DNA of 64,000 bases from Takakia lepidozioides (Eukaryota > Plantae > Bryophyta). Positions 3,126 to 61,967 of the stretch are shown here, in pieces; the first letter of the stretch is position 1, and each line of letters opens with the position of its first letter. Both the position numbers and the translations under genes were made by a program. The notes below the pieces were generated by a model. That model saw only the letters and a list, made by a program, of their open reading frames with translations. It made no database searches and had not been told where the DNA came from. The stretch lies in assembly GCA_030704615.1 (NCBI GenBank), contig CM060732.1:28520001-28584000 (forward strand), in the 5' to 3' direction.

Positions 3126-5825
3126 GATTGGGTTAACTCGTGTGTACAATTGCATCAAAACAAAAACAAGACTTCATACCTCTTAGATGCAGATAGATGC
3201 ATAAACCCTAAACCCAGATTGTGAGGCTTAAACCGCTGAAGTTGGCAGGACAGTTTTGACCATACCTTGGCGCAGCTCAACTTGAACACATCATTTGGTG
3301 CTGGTCCATCTTCTTGACAAAGATTGGCATACCTACTCAACAGGAGATTGAGTCAGGAAACACTGCAGCTACGTGCTAATTCAGAAGCTTCCAACATGAT
3401 CATTATTGCACAGACAACGGGTGTTTCCTCCTTTCAAATTGTATTGCGACCAAACCTACCTTAAATATCCAAGACAAAGCCAGACACCCTTTTGCAAATT
3501 TCTCCTGTAACTAAACAAACGGTGAAAGGCATCTGCTCTCTTTCCAGACACCGTATCACTAGTACCAAAACGGGCCACAGTTTCATGTCGACATTCGACG
3601 AAAACTCGTCTAGAATCTGCCTCCCCAAATCTCTATTTCTAACATGATTTTCACTTTCCAGCGTTGTACCTGTTAGACGTTCCAGCACTCCCGAACCAAA
3701 AATCCTTACCGTCCTCGCTGTAGACCGATCCCCTCAATCTTCTATAATAGATTGCAGCACAGCGAAACACGATATCGGAAATGGAAATGTGAAGTCTTCG
3801 GATGCTTTGATAGTCGGTAAGACGTCGAAGGGATTGGAGTTTCACGGTCGGATGCCTCCCCTGAAACCTCACGTTAAATCACCAATTTCTGGATTTCTTA
3901 TGTTATGTCCAATGATGGGAGAAACAAGAGACTAACAGATAAACACACTACCTAGGGGCTCTACAGAAGGGAATGAAGGAGAGCTTGTCTTCCCAGTAGA
4001 TGGATAAAAATGCTGATGGCACAGGCTCAGGGTTCCATGGTGCGATGGCGCAATTGATGAAGCTGTGCACTGACAAATGGAAGTGGCCATTTATCCATGT
4101 GGGTCCCTCTGCATGCCCTCCAACCATAACCTCCTCAACGCAGCAGCGCGGGGAAGGACGCATACGTGCAGCACCAAATTCAGGGGATGGGTGTCGGTTC
4201 TTTGATAGAACCTCAGATGTATGGGAAAGATTTCCCGACGTTGCTCGGTACAACCCGCCAGCTCAGACTCTGCCTCTACCGTTCAAGTATTATGGGCAGC
4301 CCTTCTACAAAGGATACGAATGGGAGAACAAGGTTTGAAGAAGGCCATGGGGATGAAGGGAGAGATATCCCTTGCCGTTGCATGAATTCGATGCGGTCAG
4401 AGTGTGGTCCTAATGGACGACAGGGCATCGCTTGTGTGCTCTTTTTGAAGTGTATGTTAGATTATTTTGATCTGGAGCTTTTCCTCGAAGTGGGGCTACT
4501 GAATGTGATTATGTAAGAACGTATGTAGCGTCTTTGCTCAGAATTAGGTTGAGACAAGGAAACACGTAGATGATACTGCTACTTGGCGTGAACAGACGAG
4601 GAAAGGAAAAGCAGATTTTATTCTAACATGCAGACTGAACAGCCACAGCAGCGATGATTTTCTTAGATTGAGTCAAGGTTGCGGTTCTTGTGGTCAGCTA
4701 ACAACTTTGAAAATCCGATTACTCATAGTTTGGAACCTGAATTCCATTCGAAGGCCATCTTTCTTTCTATCTTTCTCCATGCTGCTTTCGTGGAAGGTGC
4801 AGGGTGCACTTGTAGTCTCTATGGCTGGTGGGTGGCCATGCCGTATTTGATTTTCATGCTTAACCTTAAAAAGTGAGATATTTACACAAACCGAGGTCAA
4901 GAAAAGGGGCTCACTTGGTGAAGAGGGCCGCATTGTGAAGGTCATACGACTGACTGGGTAGTTCGTTTACCCAAAAGCTGTGGTAGGGTTAGGGTTATAG
5001 CAGAATTCCTGTGATCTTCCACTATCACAATCCGAGGCAACATCAAGATTTTCTAACTGATTATGTGAGATGAAAGACATGGACTCGACAATCTTGGACT
5101 GGTGTTCTTGACGCAAGATTTCAATCTTTATCAATTCACACCATTTTCTCTTTTTTGTGTATCTAGCGGATGGTATGAAGTTACAAGGGACCCCCCCACA
5201 GATAACCTTTCCCACTCTCATGCCAGACCTTGTATTGGCCGCTGAGGGGTTCAGAGTGATAGAATGTGGGTTTACGACGCCAGTTTCCAGCTGATCAGAC
5301 ATAGATTATGTCTATTGAGAGGATGGCAACATTGTGAGGGAAAACGTCCATCGAGGGTTTTCATATTCTTCATCACGTGTGTGTTTGACTATGGTAGATC
5401 CAAATGAACATTTTGTACTATTTGGGTGTTAAAAGAAGGGAGTATCCTTAAGACTGTTGAGCTGCAACTATGACACTCTAGCTTGGGTTGGTAAACAGAG
5501 CCCGCCTTATACTTGCGTATGAAATTGGAGATGATAGCAAATTGGAGATGATAGCCTCACCACAGGGGTTTGACTGGAAGCAAAATGTTGACTTCATCTT
5601 GCCATGTAGTCGCGGCATTTCAATGTCCTTTGTTATTGGTATTGGCAATGTCGAATTAGCAGCTGGAAACTGGAACGACATAAAGCTTCACACCTGCGCA
5701 GATTCATTCCCTTCATACCCTATGCATAAAATTTTGTCGCTAATAGGCAGCCCGAGAATATACCTGTTAATTGTTCCCAGACCGATGGTGAAGATGATAG
5801 ATAAGGCTCTTATGGAATACCAAAT

Positions 5826-6215
5826 GCTCGACAATTTTACTATCATCTACGACCCTCAACAAATCATCTACAACCATCGACAAATCATGTAGGACCCTCG
5901 ACAAATCAACCACTAGTGGTTGTAGATGATTTGTCCTGGGTTGATTTTGTGGGCAAACGGTATGCGTTGGAATACCAAATGCCAATGTCTTCATCCCACT
6001 TGTTCAACAAATATTCTCTAATAGATTCTTAGATCCTTCAAATTTATGCTTAGATGCTTTCATCTTTGAGCATTTGGTACACGAAGGAATACCGTATGAT
6101 CCTGTCCCTCGACAAATCAACTTAGTTGTTCACACCACTTGTTGACAACATGGGCGTCAACAGCGTAGGTGGCGCCACTAAGGTAGGTGGCGCCACTAAG
6201 GGAGGCGGCGCCAGG
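5826..6215 (+). repeat. Subterminal modular arrays (21-bp GACAAATCATCTACAACCATC-like and 18-bp GGCGCCACTAAGGTAGGT-like units); mirrored at ~50125-50670
   Basis: Visible tandem units. About 3 of the 18-mers on the left versus about 10 on the right. Local palindrome centred on AACCACTAGTGGTT. Confidence 0.8.
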
Positions 6216-6262
6216 TTGTTGGCACAACTTAGTTCAGATTGGCACAACCTAATTTCTGATAA

Positions 6263-6295
<33 letters not shown>

Positions 6296-6299
6296 CGTA

Positions 6300-7740
6300 G
6301 AGGGTTTAGGGTCATTTGCATAATTCAAATATGATGAGACCTTGTCTTTAAGAATGTTGGACTATAACGTAATAATTTGCTGATATTTAAAGAACAACTA
6401 GATCTAATATGTGGACGTATAATCTACAGTGTTCTAGTTTATTCGTATTACTTAGAATTTTTATATTATGAGATATGCAATAAAATATTGTGAATTAAAA
6501 AATCACAAAGGGGTAGAGATTGAATTAAAATCTATCCTGTAACAGCCTTATTAAATGCATATGAAATATCACAATTCAGTGTTCACTCTTACATGTGTTT
6601 TCTATTATTATATTGGTCATTTATGTGTACAGAGTCTCCTAAGTAGAATATTTTCATTGTCCTGCAATAAGTTATTTTTAATTAAAGATACAAGGATGTG
6701 TGAGACCGGATTATAAAAAAATAACAAATTTATTTTAAAATACAGATAAGATTTCATAATTTAATATTCACTCGTACACGCACTTGCTATTATTATTATA
6801 TAGGTCATTTATTTGTATCCCATGAATTCAAGAAGATTATGAGTAACCTATGCATAGGATGGATGCATAGGAATTGTGATAAAGAACAATTGGATCTAAT
6901 AACATGTGTGCACATATACTCTATAGTTTTATAATTGGTTCATAATACTTGGAATTTTTGTATTGACAGATATACAATGAAATATTTTCAACGAAAAATA
7001 ATTATAAATATGTGACAGATCCAATTAAAATCTATTCTATAACAGCCTTCTAAAATGCATATAAAATATCACAATTCCCTATTCTTACATGTACCTTCTA
7101 TTATTATATTGATCATTTATGTGTACAGAGTCTCATGTAGAATATTTTTCATTGTCATGCATAAGTTCTTTAAATTTTTTTTAAACACATGGATTTGGGA
7201 GATCAAATTGAAAAAATGAATGGCAAATATCATTTTAATATGCATATTCGATTTTATAATTCAATATTCATTCTAAGTTCTAACATGCACCTCCTATTAT
7301 TATATTGGTTATTTATGTGTATCGCATGAACTCAAAAATATCCTGAGTGACTTATACATAGGCTGCATGATTTAGAGATGATGTATAGATATAAAGTCAA
7401 TGCATTTCTGTACTTAAATACTTATAAATGTTTGAAATATTGTGTTCGTAAAACTTAGAATGTTTTGTATTGCTAGACATGCAATGCAATGTTCTCAATA
7501 AAAAATCACAAGGGTGTGACAAACGATAAAAAAATTATATAGCATCATTTATAAATAGGTATATAACAATTTAATTTTCATTTCTACAATGTACATGACA
7601 CATGTACCCCCAATATTATGTAGGTCATTTATAATAAGTATATCATATAACCAAGATGAAGTACTTATACAAACAAGCAACATCACAAAATATATATATG
7701 TATATATATTGCAAATGACAACATGTCACTTGTAAATATT
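6300..7740. repeat. AT-rich region of degenerate repeats (CTATTATTATATTGGTCATTTATGTG-type); mirrored at ~25740-26975 and 49876-50070
   Basis: The motif recurs near 6600, 6790, 7100, 7295 and 7615. Preceded by (CA)n(TA)n and a GGGTTTAGGG motif. Confidence 0.7.
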
Positions 7741-10700
7741 GTGTGCTTTTTCTTCATGGAGTTATTGTCTCCTCCACTAGACTACACAAAGCAATGCCCA
7801 CCCACCTAAATCCCAAAAACAATGTTTCTTTGCACATGGAAGTACTAAAACCCAAAAATAAATGAATGGACGGGGTCTACCTATATCACATGGCTAGGAA
7901 TGACATACAGTTCAATTTAAAAACTCTTCTTCAATTAATGTTACCTCATGGCCCTGTTTAGGTTAATTTTTTCCTTTATCTTTTTAATTTGAGTAACTCG
8001 ACCTTTGTCCCATTTGGATGGAGTTGCATCTGATTGATGCATCTGGAGTTCTCGTGTTGTCTGGACATGTCACAGCTCTCTAGCACTTATGGAAAAGTTG
8101 TTGTAAGCGTGTCCAATCCCATAAAAGATCCACCGACCACAATAGCTTTGCACATGATTTTTGTTTATATGTTTGTTGAAGGAGATAAAATGAGGGATGT
8201 GTGTTTTGCATCTATTAGATTAGATATTTTGAAAAGAGACAATCAATTTTTCTTCATGATTTCAACTCCTCGTGCAACATCCTTTGCATGTGACATTCTG
8301 ATTCACACGCAGCTTGGTCCTCCAACTTTCTGGACGGCTAGAGGCTCTCATATTAATTTGTGGAATTCTTCTACACACCCCGGCGACAAAATCAACTAGA
8401 GACTTAGGCATCGTACAAATATGAACTGAAAACCACGCTGCAACGTGGCGGGTGGTAGTGAAAATGCATTTGAATTTTGAGTCATTCGTAGGAAACACTT
8501 GATGTCTGTCACCTAATCCACTACAATGAATTATTGAGGTTAATAATTTTTTGTAAAGAAAATAATTAAAAATATTTATGAATTCCTTTCTTATGTATAT
8601 AGCATCATTCATAAATACATACAAGACTTAACAAATTCAATTTACATAACGGCGCCCAGTTCAACGTGGACAGGGAACTGGAATTTAAAGAAATTAAATA
8701 GAAGGGAGCATAACATGGTACATCGGCTGCACTCTTTGAATTGGAAATTAACTGCGAAATCAGACCACGCATGAGCCTATATACATAAGATATTACGGTT
8801 TATTGTTAAGGTGTTGTGCAGGTTGAAGGGTTGATCTGGAGCTTCATGATAGGTGAAGAACCTACCTTGAATTTGAGGAAAAAACAACAGCTGTTAGTCC
8901 AAGAATCCGGAAGATGGCTAGGTTGGAAGAACCTGTCCCTATATTTCTACTTCGCATCCCGGAGCATACTGGTATAGCCCTCACCAGCAGTAGTGTGGTC
9001 AAACAGCAGTTTCAAAACTCACTGCTTTTCTGTTGATGAATCATGCATTTTGCTCTAGAGCCTGTGTGTACAGAAAGAGACCAAAAATGCACAATTCATC
9101 AAAGTGATAGTAGTGTGCGTGGCCACCAGTCTTGCAAAGTACAACCTTTTTGTACTATCCGATTCACAAAACTCCGCTGGTTGCCTGCCCACAAACTGCT
9201 CCATTCCAGGGAACTTCTACCAGCACCACTCGGGATGCCCCAATCCGTGAAACTCCCTTCCTCGATGCCTTTGTAGAAGCGCAGTGCACATGGTCGGCTG
9301 ATATAAGTAGCTTCTCCCCAACGGCTTCAGAAAAGACCACCAGATCAAGGACCCAACGCTGATTCATGGCATCTCTGCCACTAATTGAAGGCATCTCTGC
9401 TGTTCGGGTCCGTGCTCAGAAAATAATGCAGTATAAACAACAAATGACACACGATGATGGAGGATCCACCACTGAATGAAGGCATCTTTGCAGTTGGCCA
9501 GGTCTTTTCTCCAAAAAACATGTAGTATAAAAAACAAATGGCACACGATGATAAAGGTGCTTTGGATGTTAAATGTGCGCAAGATGATGTTTGTGCGGTG
9601 GATGATGTCGATGGATGATTGATGATGTCGGTTGATGGATGATGGATGGATGGATGGATGGTCCATGGATGATCTCATGTGATCATCATGATGTCGGTGC
9701 GTTGTATGATGCACATGCGCTGGATGAAAAACGTTGACAGTTAGGGTTTTTACAATGTACATGTACCCCCAATATTATGTAGGTCATTTATAAGTATATC
9801 ATATAACCAATAAGACCTTATATATAACCTCATATAGCAAAGGTTGTCAAAGTTGTAGACGTTGTATACATGTATCATTAATATACAATAGACAATGGTA
9901 GCAATCATCGGCACCTTTGTTGCTTTGCCCATTCGAATTGGTCGGATCACGTACCTAGCATCTTGGAGGTATGCCTGGCATGTTAGTTTTTCTCCTCTGG
10001 ATGATATATCTCACCTTGCTTGATCCATACATTCTTGTGTTTGAGGCATCTACATATTGAGCTACAAAGAAGTCATGATATCGACCATTCTTTATAATCA
10101 TTGCCTTCTTGACTGTCACTAGCAGAGGAATCATGACAGTCTGTTCGTATGTTGAGATTAGTGATGGTGGTTACACTAGTATCACATTTGCAGCTCCCCT
10201 CTCAAGAAATATTACAATTTGAACTACTTTGACAGTCACACTTTCTGCAATTAAATATACCTCTTATGCTTTGGAGCAGGAAGAGAGAATCCCAACCTCA
10301 CCAATAGGAGATTGTAGTCACAACTATGGCAGTTTAATAGAAAAAATCTTACACAATTAGGACGGATTGTATCATGTGGGATCAATGGCCATAAGGCTAC
10401 TGCATGTACTGATGTGTGAAGAATTTCATCTACCAAGGGACTTCACCAGATAGTAACCTGTTAAGCGGTAAACCACTGATGGTACGCAGGAATGAAGGAA
10501 GATGACGTGCTGAATGGTATGATAAAGGATGGTCTGCATTAGTTTGGCATGAGAGTCTGTTTTGATTGTTGGATTTTGTAGTAGTTATCCATGGAAATTT
10601 TTCTCCAATCTGTTTCTAGCAAAGCAGACAAATGGAAGGGGAAATTGAGGGCAAATAATGAGGAGATGGGTTTCCGAGAGATGTAACATTGTAGAGTAGG

Positions 10701-11527
10701 GGCATCTTTGGAATATGATGACAATGAGCTCAAGGCAATGCATGCAAGCCGTATGGAGGCTCCTTTAATGGAAGGAAGCTGATTGATTCACGGTATCTTA
10801 TAGTTGCTGGAAGCATCTCATTCAATACTGTCTGAGACTGTCTTGCAAAGTTCTACAATCCTAGTCATTGTGAAGGTATCTATGGATTTACTTGCAGTTT
10901 TTCCGAGATGCAGGTGCCTTGATGGGTGGTTGGTTGTTTTGTTTAGTGTTGGTACAGACTTGATGGTTGTTTTCATACTCTCTATGAAAACCATGGGGAG
11001 AAAAAGAAATCATTTTTTAATGTTCGCCCACGAGTGTGTAGGGAATGCTGATTATTCCAAACTAGTAAACGGAACAAGTCTTTACACTGAATGGAAGTGC
11101 ATTGGAGCCTTTTGGAAAAGTCGGATTGTATTATGTCATATTTTTCTTACAGGTAGAATAAGATATTCATCATGCCCAGTGAAGCTGGAAGTTGGGTCTG
11201 TGGCCTAGATAAAGTTTCAAATGAGATTTCGCATTTGAATAAGACTAAGAGGGACAGATCGGGGTTTTCAATAACCTTGAATCGTATCCGCTATGCGTCA
11301 GCCCCTCGTAAGTTGGCACATGTATGCTTTGCGAAATGTCCTCTTTAGTGCACATTACTGTTGCATTTGTAGTTGAAAAATATTGTTGTCTACCTGAATG
11401 TGGTGCTCTGGTACTAAACGATGTGTAGACAAAAAATGCGAGATATCAACACACAGCAATCTCTCAAGTGCCTCCAACTTGAACTTGGGGATCCAGTCCT
11501 GACTAGTGTATTTGAGTGATTTGGCAG

Positions 11528-11669
11528 GTTTGAAATGAAACGAGTAGTTCCACTCTATCATGGGCTCGTGAAGTTTATACAAGGATCGTCAATGCGGCAA
11601 TCAGACGTAGAGAGGGTGTCTGCAGCCCGAGCCACGGCCTTCTTCTTGCTTTCCAACCAAGAAGCTGAT
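11528..11669 (+). pseudogene. Captured exon resembling the RCK domain of a BK/Slo-type K+ channel
   Basis: AG/GT-bounded segment FEMKRVVPLYHGLVKFIQGSSMRQSDVERVSAARATAFFLLSNQEAD, similar to the RCK1 pattern (QGS..n..DL.RV....A.A..lL.N). Confidence 0.5.
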
Positions 11670-13929
11670 GTACTATGCTTGCATGTGTTCCTTGAAAAAC
11701 ATTCTCTGCCCACCAGGGTTCCGATATTCATCTGTCAGAGCAGATCCTATGAAGTATTGTTTGTCAACAGATATGGATTTGCCACATGACCTTTGGTTAA
11801 TGTCACTAGGGCATTCTCAAGCTTATTGCATTACATGTCAAGGTCTGCAAAACAAACAGACCTGAAGCAGGGTCCATGGAGGGTCTAAGAAAGTCCTAGA
11901 GAACGATGACACTGCCAGAATATTGGAAGATGTTGCAGGACCCAAAGGTGGAGGATACAGCTCAGATATTGAAAGCATTGGCTGTGCATCGTGGGGACCG
12001 GGTGCGCATCATAATGGATTTCTAGAGCCAGAGTCACATCTAGCGCAGTGTGGGATGAGACCCAAACTGGGGGGGATCGAGTTTATCTGCCCTGTTCAAA
12101 TCCACTACAAAATGCTATCTCGGAGGTTGGATTCACTCCTTTCCTCTTTTCCAGTTTGTTGCAGTTTCAGTTAAAGAAAGCGAGTGGTGGAATCTCTGAG
12201 TCATAAGAATCTTCTATGTTTCCAACAATATGTCTCTCACTTCCACATCTTAAACCAGGTGTTTGTCTACCACCACAATGCTAATGCAAAGCACAGTTTA
12301 CCACTCTCTGCTGTGTCCCTTGGCCATCCTATAGATGTGATTATGTCGAAGATGTAGTACTTCAAAGGTTTTTGAATCGGGGAATGTCTGAAAACTTTTT
12401 TGGGTCGTCTGGGCATGGAGTGGATATGATGAACTTTTTCCCTTGTCTGATGTCTTCTTGGCTTGTCTCTTGCAATTGTACTTTATCCCAATTTCAAAAT
12501 TTTATATGACAAATTCTGAAACATTGCAGTAAATGAAGCTTTGATCACAATCTTGAAAGGGAATTTTACAGCATATGGCCCATTGTCTCCTTTTTCTGCG
12601 CCTGAGTATGGTGGGCTTAGATGCCAAACACAATCACCTGACTTCCTGATTAGTATTTACGATATCTCTGAAGAGCTGACTTCTGTACCCTGTGGATATG
12701 TGGTTGGTTCTATGTTGTTCCACTTGTGTCCCTTGGACACTCACTCAAATTGAACAAGTTTTTCTATAGAATCATGCGCGGCCTAAATAGTATCGGCACC
12801 TTTATCTCCCTCTCTTCTGAGGGCATTGGGGCGATTCTAGGTGGGCTCCCACAATTTACAGGTAGAGACTAGTAAGTGGGAAAACTCGCAGCCTGAAGAC
12901 CGCCTATGGCCACTAAGGCACCGCGCCCAACTGATGCATCAAAAGTGAGGAATACTTCTTCCTTTACTGCCCTCTTTACTATGAGATCCTTAAGAAACTC
13001 CACTGTCTGTTCCGTGAAACTCAATCTCTTACAAACTACTTCCATTCTGAGCCACAGAAATGCTTTCCAGCCTATTTGCACAAACCTTTGACCCTCAGGC
13101 GATCCCTTGAGTAGTAGTTGCTTTTGGGCTGCTTCTGGCTTCACACTCTATCTTTTATTCTCTTTATTGTTTGTTGTTTTCCTTTTGTCCCACAAGCTGT
13201 TTGAGCTTTCTGCGGTTGATCGAAGTTCCATTTCATTTCGTTTCTTTCCACGTTATGTGACTTTCTAGCTCTATTTCTTTTCGTGCTCAAGTATGGGATC
13301 ATCTATTATTGGAATGCTCAAACTATGTCCTGGGTGAGTCTTCCTGTGTTGATAAAAACTCTTGCACCCTTTGTTGCTCCCTAATGAAGTGAGTAGGGAG
13401 TTACAACTGCTGGTCACGGTGATAGAGATAGTTGATTTGGGTAATTTGACCTGCTCAAGTTATTAGATAGTTCATTTTAAGGTTTACTCCTTTATTTATT
13501 GGTTCTTTATCTATGTGAATTTCCTTGATGATCAGTCTTGGTTTTCATCTTTGAAAGCTTTTCCTTACATTTGATGTGGCTATTTCGTTCTATCTTTCTT
13601 AAGGTGAGTTCACAGTTTCCTAGGCTCTCACTCACTGGAAAGGTGTTCCAACACATATGCAATAATCAAATGAAGGACTTACCAGGATACCTACTGCGTT
13701 CAACAAGAGTACATGCACATTTTGGATTTGTTAATTTGGGTCTAATAACGAGTATCCATATATTTGCCCTGGGTAAGTTAAGTACGAGTTATCGAATACC
13801 TGCCAAGTGCTCTTAGCTAGAACGTGCCCCGTTTGTGCAAACTTGATGTTTTCTCCGTAATGCTTGAGATTTGTGAAGAGATCGCAACAAGAGAAAGTGG
13901 AGGAGGCTCACAACCAAATCCCAATACAA

Positions 13930-14868
13930 GAAGTTCCTTGCAGCCAGGGCCTGTCTGGCCTCTTCCCACAATCGCAAACATTGTGTGGCCATCTCCCGAT
14001 GATGAAGTTCCTTTTTGGAAACAAAATAACCCAAAACAAGGTAATTCAAAGGCAGTTGCAGTTGGCATGAGCTCATCAAAGGGCATATGTCTGGATAATG
14101 ATCTGGCATACATAATACACATGACATCGGAGAAGGCCCCCTTGGCCAAAGTGGGGGGGTTAGGGGATGTACTAACTGGTCCTGCTCGGGCATGACTTGA
14201 AAGGGGACATAAAGTGGAGGTGATGCTACCTTTCTATGAGAAGATACCTAAGGATGAGATCGAGGGCCTTGTTCATGTCGTCTCATATTCATCATATCAT
14301 AGGGGAGAATTGGGTGCCCATTCACATTTATCGTGGTAAGGTCTTGGGAGTACACATTCTATTTGGAGCCAAACAACCAATTTTTGAAGGGGTCACAAAT
14401 CTATGGAGGGTCTTATGATGACCTGGAAGCATATTTGTTTTTCAGCTGTGCCAACCTTGAATGGATGCAGGTCTGAGCTGTTGCCCTTCACAATTTGGTA
14501 ACTTGATATGTTTGCTCCATCAACCCCTTGTGAAATCGATTATATTATAATTAGGTCAGAAATGGAATTAATGTTTTCTACAAAGCTAGATACTAGATAG
14601 TGTAAAGATTGTTCAGACAAAAGTGTGGCTAGTTTGATATTGCTGCAGTCCAAAGGCCCAAACATTCAACCTTAGGAACTTTGTTCATTAATGAGACTTT
14701 ATTCATATTTGTTCATATTTGAGACCACTAACCCATCTATCTCACCCCACTTTTATCGTTCTTCTTATACACACAGATCACAAGAACCCAACCAGACATA
14801 ATTCATATCCATGAGTGGCAAATACTTGGCCTGGCAATGCTCTACTGGGACATGTACCACCACATATA
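13930..14868 (+). pseudogene. Starch synthase (SS6-like, GT5) 5' gene fragment with intron, stop and frameshifts
   Basis: WPSPDDEVPFWK; IIHMTSEKAPLAKVGGLGDVLTGPARA*LERGHKVEVMLPFYE; IYGGSYDDLEAYLFFSCANLEWMQ followed by a GT..AG intron and QPDIIHIHEWQ...LYWDMYHH. KVGGL ADP-glucose motif present; the C-terminal half is absent. Confidence 0.85.
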
Positions 14869-15435
14869 TGGTGAATATACCAGTTTCAGGCCCTGCAAGA
14901 CTATGTTGTATGAGTTTAATCAGCTGGAAGTAATCTCTGCACAATGTTTTTTTCAAGAATGTATCTTCGGATATATGGTCGTTATCCTGAATTATATCAA
15001 GATGTTAATGTCCATAGTAAACCTCGAAAATCTGGGCATGTGCAACACTTTAAATTGCAAGATATGCTTTGAATAAAGACAAAATAAATTATGAACGCCG
15101 GAACAAATATGCATTAAAAAAACAACAATATTTTTTTCATAAAAACATTACAAATGAAAATCCAAACAATTTGAAATCTAAACCAATCAAAAGCAAAGAT
15201 AAAAGAGAAATCATGTAAACAACATTCATAATCCAAATCTAGTTGTTATATCAAAACGAGCCACAATTTCTCTCTCTTTTGATGGATCTTTTTTTATATT
15301 TTTTCCAAGGCAATGTCCCCTTTCTCAGCCTCCATGGCTTGTCATGTGAGGTTATTTTTCCCTCAGCAATATATTTTGGTCTATCCCATACATTGTGTTT
15401 TATTTGAAAAGAAAAACGAGCCACATAAGTTACCC

Positions 15436-15660
15436 ACCTAGGGTTGGTAGCTCGGTTGGATAAGTGCACTGTGTGTCACCCTTGCAAGGTTCAAATCATA
15501 CCACTTTGGTCCTGCGGGTCCTGACCGGTTGGTCTGGGGGTGACGTTTCCCCCTAGTGTGCCCAATGCCTTATCTTAAAGGGGGTTAATTTTCCCCTTCT
15601 CAAGGGTCTGAAATGTAAGCAGTCACTCCCAGGTTTCCTTTAAATATAATCTAAAAAAAA
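15436..15660 (+). mobile_element. tRNA-derived SINE
   Basis: A box TAGCTCGGTTGG (15448-15459), B box GGTTCAAATC (15488-15497), A-rich tail. TTACCC on both flanks is a possible TSD. Confidence 0.65.
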
Positions 15661-15982
15661 CATTACCCTAAGTTAGATGGGTGACATGGGCCCAAAGCTG
15701 AAAAAACCATTGGCCCCTAACAGAAAAGTCGATTCAAAAGCTGAGACAGATGCAAAATGGTTTCAACTGGACATGATCTTGTTATCTAACCTCCACCCAA
15801 AAAGACAAGTGCTACCCAATCCAAAAAAATCTTTAAATCCCAAAAATCTTTGTCGTTCAATGTGGAAGAGGATACATATTTATTATTAGGAACACAAATA
15901 TGTGAAGTTTTTGAAGGGTTTGGGATGAAATGATAACAACCATCCATTTTGAGAATTATTGAAAATAATAATTTGTCGATAC

Positions 15983-17040
15983 CCTAGGGCAAATTGGGAG
16001 AACAGTAGTAGTGGTGAAGGGTGCCGCTTGGCACTCGTGGGCCCATGGGTACCAGTGGTACCCAGAGGCGTATGAGGTGCCTAGGAAGCGGGAGGGAGAC
16101 TGGATTCGAGTTTGTTGTTTGTTGGTGATGATTGCAGTGAGGGATCGGAGCGCGGTGAGTGTATTGCTTTGAAACATTTGTGAATAGATGTGATAGGGAT
16201 TTAAAAATTATTTTGAAGGGTAGAGATGTTGGCATTATGGATGCCTCATCTGGTGCCAGTAGATATGATAGTGAGTGGGCCGGTGCCCCACCCTCATCGG
16301 CGGATGCCAACGATTAATGGTGCGTATTTTTTACGTTTTTCTAGAATAGAGGCGTTAGGGAAGCAGTCGTGGCAGTATATGAATTTTATAAAATGTATGG
16401 TGATGTCTGATGATGGTGCATGAGGGGGGGGGGGGGGGAGTTAACGGGGAGGCCCTGGACTATGAGGATGTCCGGGCATAGTTTAGCGGGGCATGTGCAG
16501 GACCCGCAAGGTTGACAGATACATGGAAGGAGCCAAGTACGTACTGTATGGTCTGGAGGCTTACCCTGGTAGGTCCCAGCGTTGATGAGTGTAAACCATC
16601 TGGTTGCACTACATTGTAAGAGAAGTTTGTGGATGTGCCATACGGCGTGATTATGACGAGCGATTCGCAACCCGTGGATGACAGGGTGTGGACATTCGCT
16701 GAGAATACGAGGCCAGGTATCACGTTTAGCATGAAGGTGTGAACAAAGTGGGCAGTGTGGGGATGGGAATAGGGTTGGCCAGAAGGTGTGTTTGCGTTGA
16801 TGGCCCATATATTGGGCGTATCTAAATTTGAGTGTTTGCCTTATTTGTGTATCTGAGGCGGCTTTGGAGTTCCAGAAGTGGTTTGATAATTTATGGTGCA
16901 GGACATTGGAAGGGGTCCATTTTTGGATATGAAGCTTGGTATGGTTGAGAGAGGTTGAGGCGTGTTTTTTGGCTTCTTTAGTGAGGGTTTTAAGGAAGTT
17001 GTGGATTGGACGAGGTGATGAAGGGTCAGGTACTGGCAAA
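15983..17040 (-). mobile_element. 3' fragment of a non-LTR retrotransposon with a restriction-like endonuclease (RLE)
   Basis: CPLC..H....TWPRILSEC zinc knuckle, RHN, PDILIV. After a frameshift in the poly-G run: IHFIKFIYCHD...EKRKKYAPLI...GW..PLTIISTG. Confidence 0.75.
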
Positions 17041-17797
17041 AATGGTGTGCATGACCGACATGAATGGGGTCGACCGGTGGGTCAACTGAGGGTTTGGAGG
17101 CCCCCAGCTGGGCTAAGAGGGGCACTCGTGTATCAGCATGTCATCTGTCTCTCTTACCTTTGGGTTTGGGCTCTACCCCTATAATGCCTCCATGGCGAAG
17201 AAATGGGTTTTTTTTCCCCACCTCAAGGGTCAATTGCTTGGGCTGGTGTTTGTTTTGAAACTAAAAAGAAAAACAATAAGAAAAAAATGATTGACCTACA
17301 AAATCATATTGAAGTTGGCACATATGTCAAAGTACTAAGTGATAAAAATGTGTCAATATGGTTATGTACCTACATCAAATATGATACCACTGTAAGAGTA
17401 TCAACGTATAAGAGTTTGATATATTAAACGTCTATCAAACAGACATCCCAACTTCGACATGATACCTTTATAAGAGTATCGACAAATTATTATTTTCAAT
17501 AATTCTCAAAATGGATGGTTGTTATCATTTCATCCCAAACCCTTCAAAAACTTCACATATTTGTGTTCCTAATAATAAATATGTATCCTCTTCCACATTG
17601 AACGACAAAGATTTTTGGGATTTAAAGATTTTTTTGGATTGGGTAGCACTTGTCTTTTTGGGTGGAGGTTAGATAACAAGATCATGTCCAGTTGAAACCA
17701 TTTTGCATCTGTCTCAGCTTTTGAATCGACTTTTCTGTTAGGGGCCAATGGTTTTTTCAGCTTTGGGCCCATGTCACCCATCTAACTTAGGGTAATG

Positions 17798-18022
17798 TTT
17801 TTTTTAGATTATATTTAAAGGAAACCTGGGAGTGACTGCTTACATTTCAGACCCTTGAGAAGGGGAAAATTAACCCCCTTTAAGATAAGGCATTGGGCAC
17901 ACTAGGGGGAAACGTCACCCCCAGACCAACCGGTCAGGACCCGCAGGACCAAAGTGGTATGATTTGAACCTTGCAAGGGTGACACACAGTGCACTTATCC
18001 AACCGAGCTACCAACCCTAGGT
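17798..18022 (-). mobile_element. Mirror copy of the SINE
   Basis: Reverse complement of 15436-15660. Confidence 0.65.
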
Positions 18023-18588
18023 GGGTAACTTATGTGGCTCGTTTTCTTTTCAAATAAAACACAATGTATGGGATAGACCAAAATATATTGCTGAGGGAAA
18101 AATAACCTCACATGACAAGCCATGGAGGCTGAGAAAGGGGACATTGCCTTGGAAAAAATATAAAAAAAGATCCATCAAAAGAGAGAGAAATTGTGGCTCG
18201 TTTTGATATAACAACTAGATTTGGATTATGAATGTTGTTTACATGATTTCTCTTTTATCTTTGCTTTTGATTGGTTTAGATTTCAAATTGTTTGGATTTT
18301 CATTTGTAATGTTTTTATGAAAAAAATATTGTTGTTTTTTTAATGCATATTTGTTCCGGCGTTCATAATTTATTTTGTCTTTATTCAAAGCATATCTTGC
18401 AATTTAAAGTGTTGCACATGCCCAGATTTTCGAGGTTTACTATGGACATTAACATCTTGATATAATTCAGGATAACGACCATATATCCGAAGATACATTC
18501 TTGAAAAAAACATTGTGCAGAGATTACTTCCAGCTGATTAAACTCATACAACATAGTCTTGCAGGGCCTGAAACTGGTATATTCACCA

Positions 18589-21788: not shown

Positions 21789-21930
21789 ATCAGCTTCTTG
21801 GTTGGAAAGCAAGAAGAAGGCCGTGGCTCGGGCTGCAGACACCCTCTCTACGTCTGATTGCCGCATTGACGATCCTTGTATAAACTTCACGAGCCCATGA
21901 TAGAGTGGAACTACTCGTTTCATTTCAAAC
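21789..21930 (-). pseudogene. Mirror copy of the BK-channel-like exon
   Basis: Identical ORF 21669..21923 on the minus strand. Confidence 0.5.
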
Positions 21931-30644: not shown

Positions 30645-30699
30645 CTTGGTATCAGAGCTTAGAGTTCAGTACGCGATCGTCCTTGGGATTGGCCTCATC

Positions 30700-36168: not shown

Positions 36169-36895
36169 TGTCGCGGCCCTTTGCCTTGAGGGCAAGGGGT
36201 CGGGACACAGAAGGGGCTGCCCCTGTGGTGGGGGCAGTAGCAGCGATAGGTATGGGGGCTGAAGCACCCTTGAGTGCCCAAGGCACTCAAGGAGGCGGAG
36301 GCGCTCACTAGGCGGAGCCCCGCACACCGGGTTGCGGTGGGGGTGGCTCCACAAGGGGTGGTGGTAGCTTAAGCGGGACTTAGTGGGGGTGGCATAGGAC
36401 TCACCATGGGGTGGAGACCTCGTGGTGGGAGTCGTGGGGAGTCTTGGGACTCATCACGGCCCAAGGGGGTCGTGGTGAGTGGGCCAAGACTCACCGCGAC
36501 TCACCACCGGGAGTCGAGGGTTTTCGTGGTGGTTCGCCATAAAATGGCATGGTTGTTTGTGAAACCCCCGCGGACAGCTACAGAAGTATATATAGGGAGT
36601 AGTAACCCCGAGAACGGTGCAAGCCCATTGGTGACCAAAAACTAGTGAGTAAGCGAGCGAGCCGGAAAGCGACCAAAGAGTGGGGAGCTGTTCCGGACTG
36701 CCAACTACCAAAGGGAATTTCCCGCTGGGCCCAAATCGATGGAGGGTTCTTTGGGAGATCAAAGGGGGACCGTTATGCCCCGGTGAGCAGCCGAAGCTCC
36801 AAGTTGGCCCGGCGGCCAGGTTGGGAGTTAGGCACGCGCATCAAAGCGAGTAACTATGACTTGAAGGGGAGCTTACCGAAGTGAGGTGCGCGACA
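36169..36895 (+). repeat. 3' LTR
   Basis: Direct repeat of 29918-30644. Confidence 0.97.
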
Positions 36896-39800
36896 CCCAC
36901 GGTAACCTGATATTCTTTGCCATGAAGAACTGAGCCAATAGACAACACTATGTAAATCCGTCCATATTCGGGGCAGGGACTTCGGTGATACGAGTCACCC
37001 GAGCCTGCAAAATTCTAGCCGATTCCATCTTGCAGTCGTGATCTGCACCCGAAGCGACACGACACACTGTTTTTCCATCTTTTTTTGTTGGGTGGGAGTC
37101 GGCACCGGGTGGAGGCATTGCCGGAGCATGTGGCACATCTGTGCCCACAGTGCATGAGGGCACCACCCGGGACCGTGCAAGACGGAACCCTCCCTCTTCC
37201 AGCATGCTTATCTCGGTTGATGACAACGACGTCCCAAGTTTCACAGGCCAAATTGCGGGGGGAGGGGGCTTCATTATCACCGAAGGACGAACTGTTCCCT
37301 TGACGCATCGTGCCATATCGTCTAGGTAGAACCAGAACTTGTGGTCCTTTGACTCCCCACTATGATAAGGTTGGAACAACCCTGTGAATGTTGGAGCTGG
37401 AGTCCTCCTGGAGCCTTTGCATATTTTTGATTTGCATTTCTTGAAAGAGGGGGTCCGAATTGCCATGCAAGCCACTCTAGATCCTGGTGGGGTGCGTTCT
37501 ATATGCCACTCATTGTCAATGCAATCTGATTCATGGACACCACCTCCTCCAATGGGATTCCTGCTGCTGTGCTTGCATGATTTGCACCTGCTCCACTGGA
37601 AGAGGACCCACCTAGGAAGGGGCGGGCACACGACTTAGTCTGCACCGGAGACACCTTTGGTACAGAGAAATTGACCCTGTCCGGCCGATGGGAATCTCCA
37701 TCTGACTCTGGAGGAGTGTTCAATTTCCTTTTGCATGATCCAAATCTTTCCTCGCCTTCCAAATGGGGGACCCTGGATTGCAAAGGGGAGCCTTCAGTGC
37801 ACCTGTTCAGAGCTCTAGCTATCTTCAATGGGTCTCCGGACCTACTCGCAGCCCTTAGCATCAACAAAGTCGTATCAAGGCCCTTGCCTCCGCCCTGTCC
37901 CATCAGAAAATTGCGGTATCTGGTTTGTTGTGTAAGTGCCCGCACCATGTCATCAGCAGTGGCCACATACAAGTCACGTCCTGATTTGGTAGACTGCTGC
38001 ATCCACGCGTTGTGAACAGTCTCCGCCAAATTACAGGATGGCATGTCAGCCAAGTCCTCCAAGGACATGTCCTGCAGGAGGCATTGCATGCAAATGTGAG
38101 GAACGAAAGAAAATGGAAGAGGTTCTGCAAGTGACAATCCAACAACCCCAAACGAACAGGCACGATGCAAAGTGAAATTTATGTTTCTGGGATTGAAGAG
38201 GCTTACCGTCGTCATGAAAGCTCCCCACTGTCTGTACCTGAAGTGCCAGACAACCAACCAGTCCTCCAACTCCTTCAGGTGGATACCAGTAGCAGCACCA
38301 GAGGAGAACCACCAAGCCCGGATTGCTTGGTAAGTGCTCTCAGCTTCTCCCATTGAGGTGGCATTTTTGTACCTGAGGCAGAGCCTTCTGTGCTCCAACT
38401 AGAGGTCAGGGCAAATGCAACGCTTTGTATGACGTGCCAGAGATTGACTCCAATGGAAGAGGCATGTGCGCTCCCTATTTTCCATTGGGACCTTAGGATC
38501 CCCCGAACCAAACACGCGCCGCACTGAATTGAAATTTGCCTGTGCACTATCAGCCATGAAGCCCGCAAAATTTGTGTTCTGCATTCCATTGCGCTGCATG
38601 ACGGCCAGGAGCGAATTCCACATGAGCATCTGGGATTCAGTGTCCTCCACTGCATATCACAAATTTCTATGGAGAGCACATGCTGGTACGCTGGATCGTA
38701 CACATGGCACGCCATGGTTATCCAACCCTTCACCCGTAAGCAGTAATCAAACATTAACCAACATTTAGCCAAATCTCCTCCAGGTTGCATTCGGCGGACT
38801 ATGCTCACACCACTGCCTTCGCCCACTATGGACATCTTGAACAAATACACCTTGGATGAGCCCTGGCCAGGGAAGATACTGTTTTGAATGAATTCATAGT
38901 GACTCCTTTGTTTGAGGTCCATAATGTTGTCCATGAATCCAGCACTGCCTGTGCCCATTCTGAGTGCATTCACCTGGTTTCGAATATTGGGAGAGCTCAA
39001 CACGGAGAAATGGTCCATCACTACATCAAGTGAATCTGCATCCAACATTGGTTGTGTCGCATCCCCTTCACCCAGTATGTGTTTTTCTAGGAATGCCTTG
39101 CTAGATGCAAGGGCTATAGCCTATAGCAGAAGGTGTTGCACAAGGGGCATTGTGGAATTCCTGCTTCAGTAGATTTCTAGCGATGTCCACGCTATCCCTG
39201 TAACTTCCTTTTGACACAGGATGCTCGTGTGTACCCATATGAATGCAGGCACGAGTCATTGTCTTGCATCGGTGTGCCACCTGGTACATACGAGTGTGGC
39301 ACACAGAAACACAAGACGGGGAAAGTTTGCAGAACCTGCACACAAAAGTATTGGTCTTGGGAGGGGCAAGCCCTGGGGTAGGATTCAGGGGCACACCTTC
39401 CCACTCACTTTCGTTTGGTTTAGCGCTGTTTCTCAGGCAAGGGCAAGAAATATTCACGCACTTGCAATGCCCAACGCAAACCGACCTTCAAAATTTCAAT
39501 CCAATGTCGTTGTGGATGTTCGATGTTTTTGTCCTGCACCAAGGGTGTTTGTCATGTTTCTTGTCCATGCCTTGCAGAAGCCCAGCTAGTCCATTAGAAG
39601 ATGTGGGAGGGTTGAGCTCAAACAAGATCCCCATCAAACTCTGCAGGCATATATTGAACCCGCTGCACCCGAAGGGACTCCCAATCAACAAAACGCAGTT
39701 CGCTCTTGCACCCAGGCACCCCTGCGAGGGCTTTCAATTTCGGAATGACACTCGTTATCTCCTGCAATTCGTCATCATCCAAGAATGGAGTCGGCACTGG

Positions 39801-41529: not shown

Positions 41530-43530
41530 ACCTATTTGGAAGCTCAAACAGAGTGCGGCAACGCACACTGTTTGAGACCCAGTCTTTGTGCTTCATTTTT
41601 GATGTGAAAATCAGTCAATTTGGGCCTGTCTGTCTGGTTCAATCCACAACTGATTGGAATCTCAAACAGTGTGCGGCAACGCACACAATTTGAGACCCCA
41701 TTTGTGCTTGTTTTTTGATATGGAAATCGCCTACATACGACATCTCTGTCTGGTTCAATCCACCCTTCTTTGCTTGTTTTTTCATGTGAAAATCGGGCAC
41801 CTAGGGCCACTCTGGCAGGTTGAATCCACCACTTATTGGAAGCTCAAACAGTGTGCGGCAACGCACACTGTTTTGAGCCCCCTCTCTGCTTGTTTTTTTT
41901 TAAATGTAAAATGGGGCCAAACAGGGCCACTCTGGAAGGTTGAATCCACCCCTTATTGGAAGCTCAAACAGTGAGCGTACACTGTTTGAGCCCCCCTGTG
42001 TGATTGTTTTTTGTTGTGAAAATAGGGCACATAGGGCCAATCTGGCAGGTTGAATCCACCCCGAATTGGAAGCTCAAATAGTGTGCGGCAACGCACACTA
42101 TTTGAGCCCCCTTCTTTGCTTGTTTTTTCATGTGAAAACCGGGCACCTAGGGCCACTCTGGTAGGATGAATCCAACACTTATTGGAAGCTCAAACAGTGT
42201 GCGGGCAACGCACACTATTTTGCGCCCCCTCTTTGCTTGTTTTTTGATGTGAAATGGGGCCAAACAGGGCCACTCTGGAAGGTTGAATCCACCCCTTATT
42301 GGAAGCTCAAACAGTGTGCGTCAACGCACACTGTTTGAGCCCCCCTGTGTGATTGTTTTTTGTTGTGAAAATAGGGCACATAGGGCCACTCTGGCAGGTT
42401 GAATCCACCCCGAATAGGAAGCTCAAACAGTGTGCGGCAACGCCACTGTTGTGAGCCCCCTCTCTGCTTGTTTTTTGATTTGAAATTGGGCCAGAGAGGG
42501 CCACTCTGGCATGTTGAATCCAACCCTTATTGGAAGCTCAAACAGTGTGCGTTGCCGCACACTGTTTGAGCCCCGTTATTTGCTTGTTTTTTGATGTGAA
42601 ATTCGGGCACATAGGCCACTCTGGCAGGTTGAATCCACCCATTATTGGAAGCTCAAACAGTGTGCGGCAACACACACTGTTTGAGCCCCCTTTTTTGCTT
42701 GTTTTTTGACTTGAAAATCGGCCACATACGGCCACTCTGGTAGGTTGAATCCACCCCTTATTGGAAGCTAAAATAGTGTGCGGCAACGCACACTGTTTGA
42801 GCCCCCTTATTTGCTTGTTTTTTGATGTGAAATTCGGGCACCTAGGGCCACTCTGGCAGGTTGAATCCAACCCTTATTGGAAGCTCAAACAGTGTGCGGC
42901 AACGCACACTGTTTTGAGCCCCCTCTCTGTTTGTTTTTTGATGTGAAAATCGGGCCCTTAGGGCCACTCTGGTAGGTTTAATCCACCCCGAATTGGAAGC
43001 TCAAACAGTGTGCGGCAACGCACACTGTTTGTGCCCCCTTCACTGCCTGTTTTTTTATTTGAAAATCGGCCACTCAGTGCCACTATGCCATGTTCAAATC
43101 ACCCTTATTGGAAGCTAAAATAGTGTGCGGCAACGCACACTGTTTGAGCCCCCTTTTTTGCTTGTTTTTTGATGTGAAATTCGGGCTTGTGAGGGTCACT
43201 CTGGTAGGTTGAATCCAACCCTTATTCGAAGCTCAAACAGTGTGCGGCAACGCACACTGTTTTGAGCCCCCTCTCTGTTTGTTTTTTGATGTGAAATTGG
43301 GCCAAACAGGGCCAGTATGCATGCTCAATACACCCATAGTTGGAAGCACGAACATTGTGCGGCAACGCACACTGTTGGTGCACCCTTCTTGGCCCCCTCT
43401 CTGCCTGTGTTTTGATGTGGTAATGTGCCACATAGGGCCAAATGTCATGTTTAAAACACCCCTATTTGGAAGCTGAAACAGTGTGCGGCAACGCACACTG
43501 TTTTCGGCCACCACACTGCTTGTTTTTTGA
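41530..43530. repeat. Tandem array of 17 ~116-bp units, each with the palindrome AAACAGTGTGCG-GCAA-CGCACACTGTTT
   Basis: Palindromes start near 41547, 41664, 41846, 41966 (deleted form), 42076, 42192, 42309, 42425, 42540, 42655, 42771, 42887, 43003, 43118, 43235, 43351 and 43476. Confidence 0.95.
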
Positions 43531-43630
43531 TGAGAGATTGGGGCACACAGGCCTGTCTGCCATGCTCAAAACACCATCGTTTCTTGCCTCTCTCTTATAT
43601 CAATTTGAATGAACAACCTTACAGGAGAAG

Positions 43631-48597: not shown

Positions 48598-49875
48598 GGC
48601 CCATTCTCTACTTGTCTGTGAGGTTGATTCCGAAAGTGTGGCCCAAGAGAGTTGTGGGTTCACCCTCCTTCAGCCAGAACAATCCAGAGTCATTTCCCCA
48701 TGTGGGTACCAAGCCTATGGTGAATTTGGATATATCCCCAACCAGAAGGGCTTTGGTTTTAGACCAATTCACTCTGAAGCCGGAAACCTTGCAAAATTGC
48801 CCTAGTGTTTCTTCTGCAGCCTGAAGTGTAGATGGAAGAGTGTTGCAGTAGGATCATGACCCAATTACGGAATGTCTGGGGCATCCCTACCTTAGCCAGA
48901 ATGTCAAGAAGAAAGCCCCAATCTACTTTATCGAATGCCTTTTCAAAATCCAATAACCAGAGTGCCAGAGCCTGTCCTGATGCAGTTGCAAAGTAAGCTG
49001 CCTCATGAGCTAGCAGTACATTATCCAATATGTATCTCCCCTTAATGAAACCTATCTGACCCGTTCTAATCAGTGCGGGAAGGAGAGGCTGCAGACGGAG
49101 AGCCAGAGCCTTGGCAATTATTTTGTAGGCCACATTCAAAAGAGTGATTGGTCTATAGTTGTTAATGTCTGCCCTGTCTCCCATTTTGAACAAGAGAGTT
49201 ATTACCCCTTGGGCCATAGAGGAAGGCATGATCCCGTCAGATTTAATCCTATTGGCCATAGAGCAGAAGTCCTGGGAGATGTGAGGCCATATTGCCTTGT
49301 AGAACTCCACTGGCATGCCATCAATACCTGGGGCCTTTTTGTTATTCATTTTGTCTAAGGCCTTCCCGAGCTCAAGAAGAGTGAAATCAGCTTCTAGATC
49401 CTGAGACAGATGAGGCTGAAGTTTACGGGGCACAGCCGAGAGCACTTCATCCAAATAATCACGATGCTGGGGTTCCTTCGGATCCGCTTGGAAGAGTTTG
49501 GCAAAGTGGTTTGAACGCTGCCTCACTCATAATCTTAGGGTCGGAGGATTTAGTGCCTTGGTTATCCAAGTAGAGCTCATGAACCCTCTGGAGAGACCTT
49601 TTAAGTTTGACTTTCTCGAAGAAGTATTTAGACATTTTTTCACCTTTTGCTGACCAGTTGATGCTTGCTTGCATACGCATTTTTTGCTCTTGCTTGAGCT
49701 GGAACATGTCTAGGTTTTGGCGGGCTTCCAGGTAGGTTTGGAAGGTATGGTCATCGCATGTGTTGTTTTCTATTTGTTTCTGACATACATTCAGGCATTT
49801 TTTGAGGGCCAGAACACGTTCCTTCTGGGTAGCAGATATATCTCTACTCATGTCTTGGCTTGCCTTACATGCTAC
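48598..49875 (-). pseudogene. L1 ORF2 reverse transcriptase region (partly deleted)
   Basis: KAPGIDGMPVEFYK, NYRPITLLNVAYKIIAKALALRL, QIGFIKGRYILDN, LDFEKAFDKVDW, SGFRVNWSKT. The RQG/YADD segment is missing. Confidence 0.9.
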
Positions 49876-50684
49876 TCACAATATTTTATTGCATATCTCA
49901 TAATATAAAAATTCTAAGTAATACGAATAAACTAGAACACTATAGATTATACGTCCACATATTAGATCTAGTTGTTCTTTAAATATCATCAAATTATTAC
50001 GTTATAGTCCAACATTCTTAAAGACAAGGTCTCATCATATTTGAATTATGCAAATGACCCTAAACCCTCTACATATATATATCAGAAATTAGGTTGTGCC
50101 AATCTGAACTAAGTTGTGCCAACAACCTGGCGCTGCCTCCCTTAGTGGCGCCACTAACCTTGTTGGCGCCACCTCCCTTAGTGATGCCACCACCATTGTT
50201 TGTGCCCCGTGCCTTAGTGGCGCCATGAACCTTGTTGGCGCTGCCTGCCTTATTGGCGCCACGAACCTTAATGGCGCCACCTGCCTTAGTGGCGCCACCT
50301 ACGTTGTTGACGCCCATGTTGTCAACAAGTGGTGTGAACAACTAAGTTGATTTGTTGAGGGATGTGGTCATACGGTATTCCTTCGTATACCAAATGCCCG
50401 ACAAATCAAAGATGAAAGCATCTAAGCATAAATTCGAAGGATCTAAGAATCTATTAGAGAATATTCGCTGAACAAGTGGGATGAAGACATGGGCATTTGG
50501 TATTCCAACGCATACTGTTTGCCCACAAAATCAACCCTGGACAAATCATCTACAACCACTAGTGGTTGATTTGTCGAGGGTCCTAGATGATTTGTCGATG
50601 GTTGTAGATGATTTGTTGAGGTTCGTAGATGATTTGTCGAGGGTTGTAGATGATAGTAAAATTGTCGAGCATTTGGTATTCCAT
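49876..50684 (-). repeat. Right arm, outer part (pairs with 5812-~6493)
   Basis: TCACAATATTTTATTGCATATCTC... resumes the arm within ~10 bp of where it was interrupted at 26975. Confidence 0.95.
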
Positions 50685-51133
50685 AGGCTCTTTCGAAAGT
50701 GTTTGATGGCGTCAAACACATACTGTTTTTGAGCTCTGCACTACCATATATTGCGTACATTTCTTTCCCCTCTTCCATATCATGCGTCATGACATTATGA
50801 CTACAAAACTTTAAATGCGGTTGTCTGTACTCCTTCAAGCAATATCATAATAGTAGATATCTTTGGAGGGTTTCATCATACCACCCCCTTGAGACAAACT
50901 CCTAGATGTCCTATGTCTTTGGTCGATTTTATTTTTCCAACGACTTGGGTACATAAAATTAGCCAGAAAATTTATAATGTTTGTGACGTTCAAATTTAGG
51001 GTACAACGCCCAAAACCCTATTCTTGCTAGGGTTTAGAGTTTTTGTATTTGTCCCTCTCTTTCTCTCTCTCTCCCTTTCCCTTTCAACTTTTGCTTTGGC
51101 CCAGAGAGGAGAGTAGATTCAAGGGTCGGGACG

Positions 51134-61678: not shown

Positions 61679-61967
61679 GTAGGCACTGATGGGGCAATGA
61701 GATCTTTTATTCTTAATATTTTGAGAATAGAGCGACCGCCAGTACAACGGTCGCTTTTAATTTTTATATTTTTAAGTTTAAGCGACCACCGGTGTGACGG
61801 TCATTTATTTTTATTTATTTTTGTTTATATATATATATATATAATGGTAGGCACTGATGGGGCAATGAGATCTTTTATTCTTAATATTTTGAGAATAGAG
61901 CGACCGCCAGTACAACGGTCGCTTTAATTTTTATATTTTTAAGTTTAAGCGACCACCGGTGTGACGG

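Follow-up and report, generated by a model that had tools for sequence, protein, structure and literature searches.

In Galileo, long terminal inverted repeats (TIRs) have grown by inverted duplication of internal sequence, and the longest-armed copies are non-autonomous (PMC3573991). Mutator-like elements make target-site duplications (TSDs) of 8–10 bp (PMC5225508), aberrant transposition can give rise to inverted transposon duplications that yield hairpin RNA (PMC3260210; preprint 10.1101/2020.01.07.897926), and the arms of sex-chromosome palindromes are kept more than 99% identical by arm-to-arm conversion (PMC8981503). Here we describe a 22-kb inverted repeat with 10-kb arms in a stretch of 64,000 nucleotides from the bryophyte Takakia lepidozioides (assembly GCA_030704615.1, contig CM060732.1, positions 28,520,001–28,584,000 of the forward strand), referred to below as the window and numbered from its first base. 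We think that this locus is probably a real but dead non-autonomous class II TIR transposon, foldback-structured and carrying a cargo of gene fragments. Its informative part is a two-step history of the arms that can be dated against a retrotransposon lying within one of them.

Anatomy of the inverted repeat

Comparison of the window with itself, by a seed-and-extend scan and by BLAST, found a single large inverted repeat that is continuous from its tips to its centre, apart from a split of the right arm by later insertions (Table 1). Arm boundaries had been proposed in a preliminary description of this DNA, and the self-alignment places them within a few bases of those positions. The direct repeats that had been noticed at the flanks are likewise present, as the 8-bp sequence AGGCTCTT, which abuts the element ends on both sides, immediately outside a perfect 39-bp TIR. 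The chance of identity over 8 bases at two fixed positions is ~1.5e-5. A TIR abutting a direct TSD of fixed length is the arrangement that identifies a class II TIR transposon, and it is found here at both ends. One insertion event joined the two ends to the present site, as the duplication records; the transposon would have landed here once, creating the 8-bp TSD.

Table 1. Coordinates of the element, its parts and the sequences nested within it (window positions;., no strand assigned)
Feature	Position	Strand	Remarks
Left TSD copy	5804–5811	.	8 bp, AGGCTCTT
Left arm	5812–15985	+	10,174 bp
Left terminal region	5812–6496	+	TIR, GGAATACCAAATGC copies, 21-bp array, 18-bp GGCGCC array, (AC)n/(TA)n
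Left TIR	5812–5850		39 bp, perfect, beginning ATGGAATACCAAATGCTCGACAA
Motif GGAATACCAAATGC, left terminal region	5814 and 5969		
Left 21-bp array	5842–5908		3.2 copies
Left 18-bp palindromic GGCGCC array	6165–6213		2.7 copies
Outer left arm, old tier	6497–8595	+	AT-rich
Inner left arm, young tier	8596–15985	+	
Possible captured CASTOR/POLLUX-type ion channel exon	11565–11666	+	Slo-like RCK, sub-threshold
Starch synthase IV-like fragment, decayed	14110–14905	+	GT5 profile positions 2–162, four collinear pieces
GT5 piece	~14110–14192	+	Profile positions 2–24
GT5 piece	14196–14336	+	Profile positions 31–59
GT5 piece	~14350–14473	+	Profile positions 80–123
GT5 piece	~14785–14905	+	Profile positions 126–162
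Unique centre between arms	15986–17472	.	1,487 bp
Retroelement pol tail, 5′-truncated (most likely)	16093–17075	-	tblastn
Right arm, in two parts	17473–26982 and 49876–50684	-	10,319 bp
Inner right arm, young tier	17473–24863	-	
Mirror copy of starch synthase IV-like fragment	~18552–19347	-	
Mirror of possible CASTOR/POLLUX-type exon	~21792–21893	-	
Outer right arm, old tier	24864–26982	-	Begins with 12-bp indel TATATAAAATAT
Later insertions	26983–49875	.	22.9 kb
A-rich tail, low-coordinate junction	~26983–27012	-	
Ty3/gypsy LTR retrotransposon	29918–36896	+	728-bp LTRs, TSD CCCAC
Tandem array of 116-bp units	41542–43528		Each with 36-bp palindrome GCTCAAACAGTGTGCG-GCAA-CGCACACTGTTTGAGC
Reverse transcriptase fragment	48762–49526	-	
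Right terminal region	49876–50684	-	18-bp array, 21-bp array, TIR
Right 18-bp array	50128–50314		9.6 copies
Right 21-bp array	50567–50654		4.2 copies
Right TIR	50646–50684		39 bp
Right TSD copy	50685–50692	.	8 bp, AGGCTCTT

Three strongly over-represented motifs are concentrated at the two ends of the element, in the last ~550 bp on each side. GGAATACCAAATGC has four exact matches, all of them terminal, and six matches when up to two mismatches are allowed (0.7 expected). For GATGATTTGTCGAGGGT, 11 of the 12 matches fall in the two ends (0.1 expected in all), and for GGCGCCAC, 12 of 13 (0.7 expected). The 18- and 21-bp arrays differ in copy number between the left and right ends, as had been described; the 18-bp unit is a perfect palindrome, CTTAGTGGCGCCACTAAG, repeated at 18-bp spacing, with GGCGCC occurring three times in the left array and six times in the right. 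A transposase or an accessory protein usually binds at subterminal arrays of this sort, and the transposase of a partner element would probably read the end-confined motifs GGAATACCAAATGC and GATGATTTGTCGAGGGT and the palindrome CTTAGTGGCGCCACTAAG. Because neither the TIR nor a full subterminal motif recurs inside the element, we count it as one element and not two.

We also note that a core of the subterminal motifs, ATTTGTCGA, is present eight times in the window (0.4 expected): six times within the terminal arrays and once at the innermost tip of each arm, at 15971–15979 (+) and 17479–17487 (-). Seen post hoc, the inner-tip copies may point to a pseudo-end that took part in the formation of the palindrome, and to aberrant transposition like that of Ac composite insertions.

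Cargo of gene fragments

Stop-to-stop open reading frames (ORFs) of at least 45 aa were collected from one arm and the centre. No transposase family or domain was recognized among these 113 ORFs, nor were the BED, DDE or dimerisation domains of hAT elements, and the longest arm ORF encodes 136 aa. This agrees with the earlier remark that the element has no transposase of its own, and it cannot move itself. Mobilisation would occur in trans, by transposase supplied from a partner element elsewhere.

The body of the element would be Pack-type cargo, made up of decayed pieces of host genes in a palindromic arrangement. Each arm contains a fragment resembling starch synthase IV (SSIV), in which four collinear pieces match the GT5 profile; the first of these also matches Arabidopsis starch synthase 4 in a PDB sequence search. 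The reading is broken by an in-frame stop (14193–14195), two frameshifts and an intron-like gap (14474–14784), and after the fourth piece the later part of the starch-synthase catalytic domain is not present. Given the stop, the frameshifts and the missing remainder of the domain, the fragment is a decayed, partial gene copy. Since the stop and the frameshifts are common to both arms, and identical there, the decay is older than the last arm-to-arm copying. A captured exon of a CASTOR/POLLUX-like channel is possible in ORF 11520–11786, where a Slo-like RCK match in Pfam scores 23.0 bits, just under the cut-off of 24. We take this ORF to resemble the gating ring of CASTOR/POLLUX, a likeness that a PDB sequence search did not confirm. 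The TIR and TSD, the subterminal arrays, the captured gene fragments and the lack of a transposase together sustain the proposal that this is a non-autonomous, gene-capturing transposon.

Two tiers of arm identity and their order

We aligned the arms base by base and compared their divergence by Fisher tests, both between tiers and against the long terminal repeats (LTRs) of the gypsy retrotransposon that lies in the right arm. The terminal 690 bp carry ~20 substitutions together with indels in the arrays and microsatellites, a divergence of ~3% between the arms. Over the adjoining 2.1 kb (6497–8595) there are 51 substitutions relative to the partner sequence (2.4%). From 8596 to 15985, a distance of 7.4 kb, only four substitutions and three single-base homopolymer indels are found (0.054%). 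The divergence of the outer 2.8 kb, 2.58%, differs from the 0.054% of the inner 7.4 kb with p = 1.2e-35. The step in identity is sharp. It is located at the 12-bp indel TATATAAAATAT (24864–24875 in the right arm, near 8595 on the left) and adjoins a cluster of 8 mismatches in 114 bp.

The two gypsy LTRs differ at 6 of 728 bp (0.82%; 99.2% identical), which sets them above the inner arms (p = 8e-5) and below the outer arms (p = 3e-3). If mutation rates were similar, the order of events is as follows: (i) the inverted ends, over at least 2.8 kb; (ii) the nested insertions in the right arm and (iii) the copying of the inner 7.4 kb. Because inner-arm divergence is below that of the gypsy LTRs, the inner arms were copied from arm to arm after the gypsy insertion, so that what first inserted may have differed from the 22-kb palindrome seen today. 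The earlier suggestion that the element inserted as one unit thus stands for a TSD-flanked element that arrived in one insertion, but not for the 22-kb structure as it is now, whose inner arms post-date the gypsy element.

We envisage the following history. The inverted ends would be old over at least 2.8 kb. A long interspersed nuclear element (LINE), and then the gypsy element and other DNA, would have entered the right arm in situ. Last would come one arm-to-arm copying event, proceeding from the centre out to the heterology at 8595 and leaving the inner 7.4 kb near-identical. Two routes could account for the copying: mismatch correction or conversion within an intrastrand hairpin, advancing from the centre as far as a blocking heterology, or fold-back, template-switch repair primed in the old repeats. 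Both would yield a centre-out tract with a sharp outer edge, so the present sequence does not separate them.

Two shorter repeats are carried by the arms. A degenerate direct duplication of ~490 bp lies in the outer arm (6388–6999 and 6880–7506, 75% identical) and is mirrored at 26107–26956; because both arms share it, this duplication is older than the inverted duplication. A 55-bp direct repeat, ~93% identical, has one copy in the old tier (7600–7654) and one in the young tier (9759–9810), and is also mirrored in the right arm.

Centre of the palindrome

The only sizeable ORF of the element lies in the unique centre (16389–17081, minus strand). It has no Pfam family and no relatives in a word search; a full search returned 378 relatives. 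In the long relatives, an RNase H domain lies directly upstream of the matched part, and in one relative a zf-RVT match falls inside it. Homology detected by tblastn nearly reaches the C-terminus of the relatives, and no RNase H part of this retroelement was found by tblastn in the window. Judged by these relatives, the centre is most likely the 5′-truncated pol tail of a retroelement, most likely of a non-LTR element. The 3′ end of the tail abuts the tip of the left arm, and ~250–390 bp of AT-rich DNA follows in the centre. Two other assignments were rejected: a DNA transposase is ruled out for the centre ORF by relatives with an upstream RNase H domain and a zf-RVT-like tail, and membership of the centre and the right-arm nest in the same LINE family is not supported, as the two show no similarity. 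The retroelement tail may have reached the tip of the hairpin by late insertion, or as filler DNA at a fragile tip or break.

Two details of the centre were noted in passing. A run of 14 G residues at 16424–16438 interrupts the retroelement frame, and this frameshift may be a homopolymer sequencing error and not decay. Inspection by eye also found the 6-bp repeat GATACC at 15978–15983 and 17461–17466, bracketing nearly the whole centre; excision of the bracketed DNA would leave a palindrome with almost no spacer (...TCGATAC CTTTATAAGA GTATCGA...). The pair could be a target duplication left by a late insertion, or a coincidence. The retroelement homology ends ~390 bp short of the right GATACC copy, which weighs against the idea that the whole centre is a late insertion.

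Later insertions and flanking sequences

The DNA that splits the right arm contains several elements. At its low-coordinate junction there is an A-rich tail, and the reverse transcriptase fragment near the opposite end is on the same strand; this arrangement suggests that a LINE inserted here first and that other elements invaded it later. The gypsy element is apparently young and complete-looking, with gag, protease, reverse transcriptase, RNase H and integrase domains, its pol being split over four ORFs. A single unit of the 116-bp tandem array has its loop inverted (GTTGCC). The ORFs that flank this array have no Pfam family, and no TIR pair that would delimit an element containing the array was found within the nest.

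The preliminary description had also joined the flanks of the element into a continuous frame and seen in it a clean empty site. The frame is indeed open across the joined flanks, with 108 codons ending at 5811 and 35 more starting at 50693. It is weak evidence, however, because the left piece (ORF 5482–5811) has no Pfam family and no word-search relatives and because open frames of this kind are common: stop-free stretches of the same length cover 4–18% of flank positions. On the same grounds we do not accept the flank ORF as an established exon.

Further out, the left flank encodes a copia-type gag with a zinc knuckle (1377–1991, plus strand), which raises the possibility that the insertion took place within or next to an old copia retrotransposon. 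Exons in the flanks match WD40/CAF1C, GPN-type ATP_bind_1 and NIF/FCP1. Two tandem units of 168 bp, followed by long (TA)n tracts, are present at 61675–62018, and there is a similar 122-bp duplication at 57402–57644.

Alternative explanations

Several points weigh against the interpretation of the locus as a dead foldback transposon with late-copied inner arms. A single copy was seen in everything we searched, namely the 64-kb window, a TIR scan of metagenome contigs and exact-protein look-ups: BLAST of the window against itself found no second copy of the element or of its ends, the exact TIR 23-mer had 0 matches in the metagenome contigs, look-ups of three window ORFs were blank and relatives of the outer-arm ORF 8034–8396 were not found. 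Neither a partner transposase nor an empty site came to light in the same material. The terminal ATGG fits neither the ends that are usual for hAT elements (YARNG) nor those usual for Mutator (G-rich). Dating the steps by divergence presupposes that the AT-rich outer arms, the inner arms and the LTRs all mutate at the same rate. Finally, the inner palindrome is known from assembled sequence alone. It might accordingly be asked whether this near-perfect palindrome (8596–24863) is an assembly artefact, produced by a chimeric fold-back read or a mis-join, with the true element having 2.8-kb inverted ends and a different interior. Inner arms that are 99.95% identical, lying beside outer arms at 97.4%, are what such an error might produce, and homopolymer lengths are among the few differences that remain between them. 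Fold-back read chimeras, however, do not have a 1.5-kb unique spacer, and the step in identity occurs at an indel inside continuous homology and not at a join. The inner arms also differ by four real substitutions and by homopolymer calls that are independent, and the three homopolymer-length differences argue that the arms were assembled independently. We therefore regard an artefact as unlikely.

That the complete 22-kb palindrome, with its 10-kb arms, already existed and moved as a unit, with ongoing conversion keeping the inner arms alike, is a possibility that we entertain with considerable doubt. The inverted repeat is unbroken from tips to centre, its ends and the duplication are intact and arm-to-arm conversion at more than 99% identity is well known (PMC8981503). 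This explanation leaves open why the 2.1 kb at 6497–8595, which are contiguous with the inner arms, escaped conversion. In addition, homogenisation last took place after the gypsy element had entered in situ, so the arms as they now stand are no record of what inserted; one copy was seen in the window and no empty site is known. That two complete elements in inverted orientation form a composite (macrotransposon), or that host DNA underwent an inverted segmental duplication with no transposon involved, is very improbable. Alternative transposition of paired ends can create large inverted duplications (preprint 10.1101/2020.01.07.897926), and the subterminal motif core does recur at the inner tip of each arm; but internal copies of the TIR or of full subterminal motifs are missing, for which reason we reject a composite of two whole elements, and the homology stops exactly at the 8-bp direct repeat, which is unexpected for a plain segmental duplication.

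More speculatively, the locus could be a self-homogenising palindrome borne on a transposon, in which hairpin pairing and mismatch correction work from the centre outwards and the 7-kb hairpin gives rise to double-stranded RNA that silences the element's own family and perhaps the SSIV gene. Mu killer and Ac composite insertions serve as models for such a hairpin silencer. We think it improbable that the locus acts in this way; if small interfering RNAs did arise from the hairpin, the locus would be a naturally occurring trigger of transposon silencing, and if not, it is a dead, solitary element without evident effect on its host. As a dead foldback transposon with a dated history, the locus preserves in sequence the stages by which a cut-and-paste transposon can acquire inverted arms of 10 kb, and it provides a case of gene-fragment capture in a seedless plant.

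Comparison with known systems

For all the extreme length of its arms, the element belongs to a known kind, the long-armed foldback and Pack-type transposons, and it calls for no new mechanism. Its 8-bp duplication has the length made by hAT elements, fits P-like elements (7–8 bp) and falls within the Mutator-like range. Our rough apportioning among superfamilies puts a P-like affiliation first, with hAT and Mutator level behind it, and each of the three is tentative taken singly. The terminal bases are ATGGA, or TATGG when shifted by one base, and thus depart from the short-TIR consensus of hAT elements; no remnant of a hAT dimerisation domain or transposase was recognized among the 113 ORFs of one arm and the centre. 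In other respects hAT Ds-like elements are similar to the element described here, having an 8-bp duplication, a short perfect TIR and short subterminal motifs in both orientations (PMC3260210).

Pack-MULEs and other Mutator-like elements with long TIRs, including foldback forms such as Tm1, are also non-autonomous and carry unrelated host gene fragments (PMC5225508; PMC5861414; PMC3310237; PMC3169594). With inverted ends that measure at least 2.8 kb and a duplication of 8 bp, the element falls within what is expected of this group (TIRs of at least 100 bp and duplications of 8–11 bp), and the SSIV-like fragment is the kind of host gene piece, unaccompanied by a transposase, that marks a Pack-MULE; the RCK-type exon is sub-threshold. 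Pack-MULEs differ in that a 9-bp duplication is commoner among them, whereas here it is 8 bp, the ends are not G-rich and the cargo has itself been duplicated in inverted orientation. Sex-chromosome palindromes share with this locus kilobase-scale inverted arms around a spacer and an identity above 99.9% that is younger than neighbouring insertions (PMC8981503; PMC7023750). They measure tens to hundreds of kilobases, however, whereas the palindrome described here has arms of ~10 kb, lies inside a transposon, is homogenised over its inner three quarters and contains no functional genes.

Galileo (P superfamily) and the other foldback-like TIR elements of Drosophila, FB and Tetris, resemble the element in their long inverted ends and in the internal tandem arrays of these, whose copy number is not the same at the two ends, and Galileo further resembles it in its non-autonomous long-armed copies and its duplication of 7–8 bp (PMC3573991; PMC4079207). 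In FB elements of Drosophila the arms consist nearly entirely of short tandem repeats and the duplication is 9 bp; here each 10-kb arm has less than 0.3 kb of arrays, and the duplication measures 8 bp. Galileo arms reach at most 1.25 kb, compared with 10 kb in the present element, which is composed mostly of unique cargo DNA and not of repeats and resides in a plant host. The arms are thus exceptionally long relative to published foldback elements, as had been supposed, and they extend the known size range of foldback-type arms about eightfold over Galileo.

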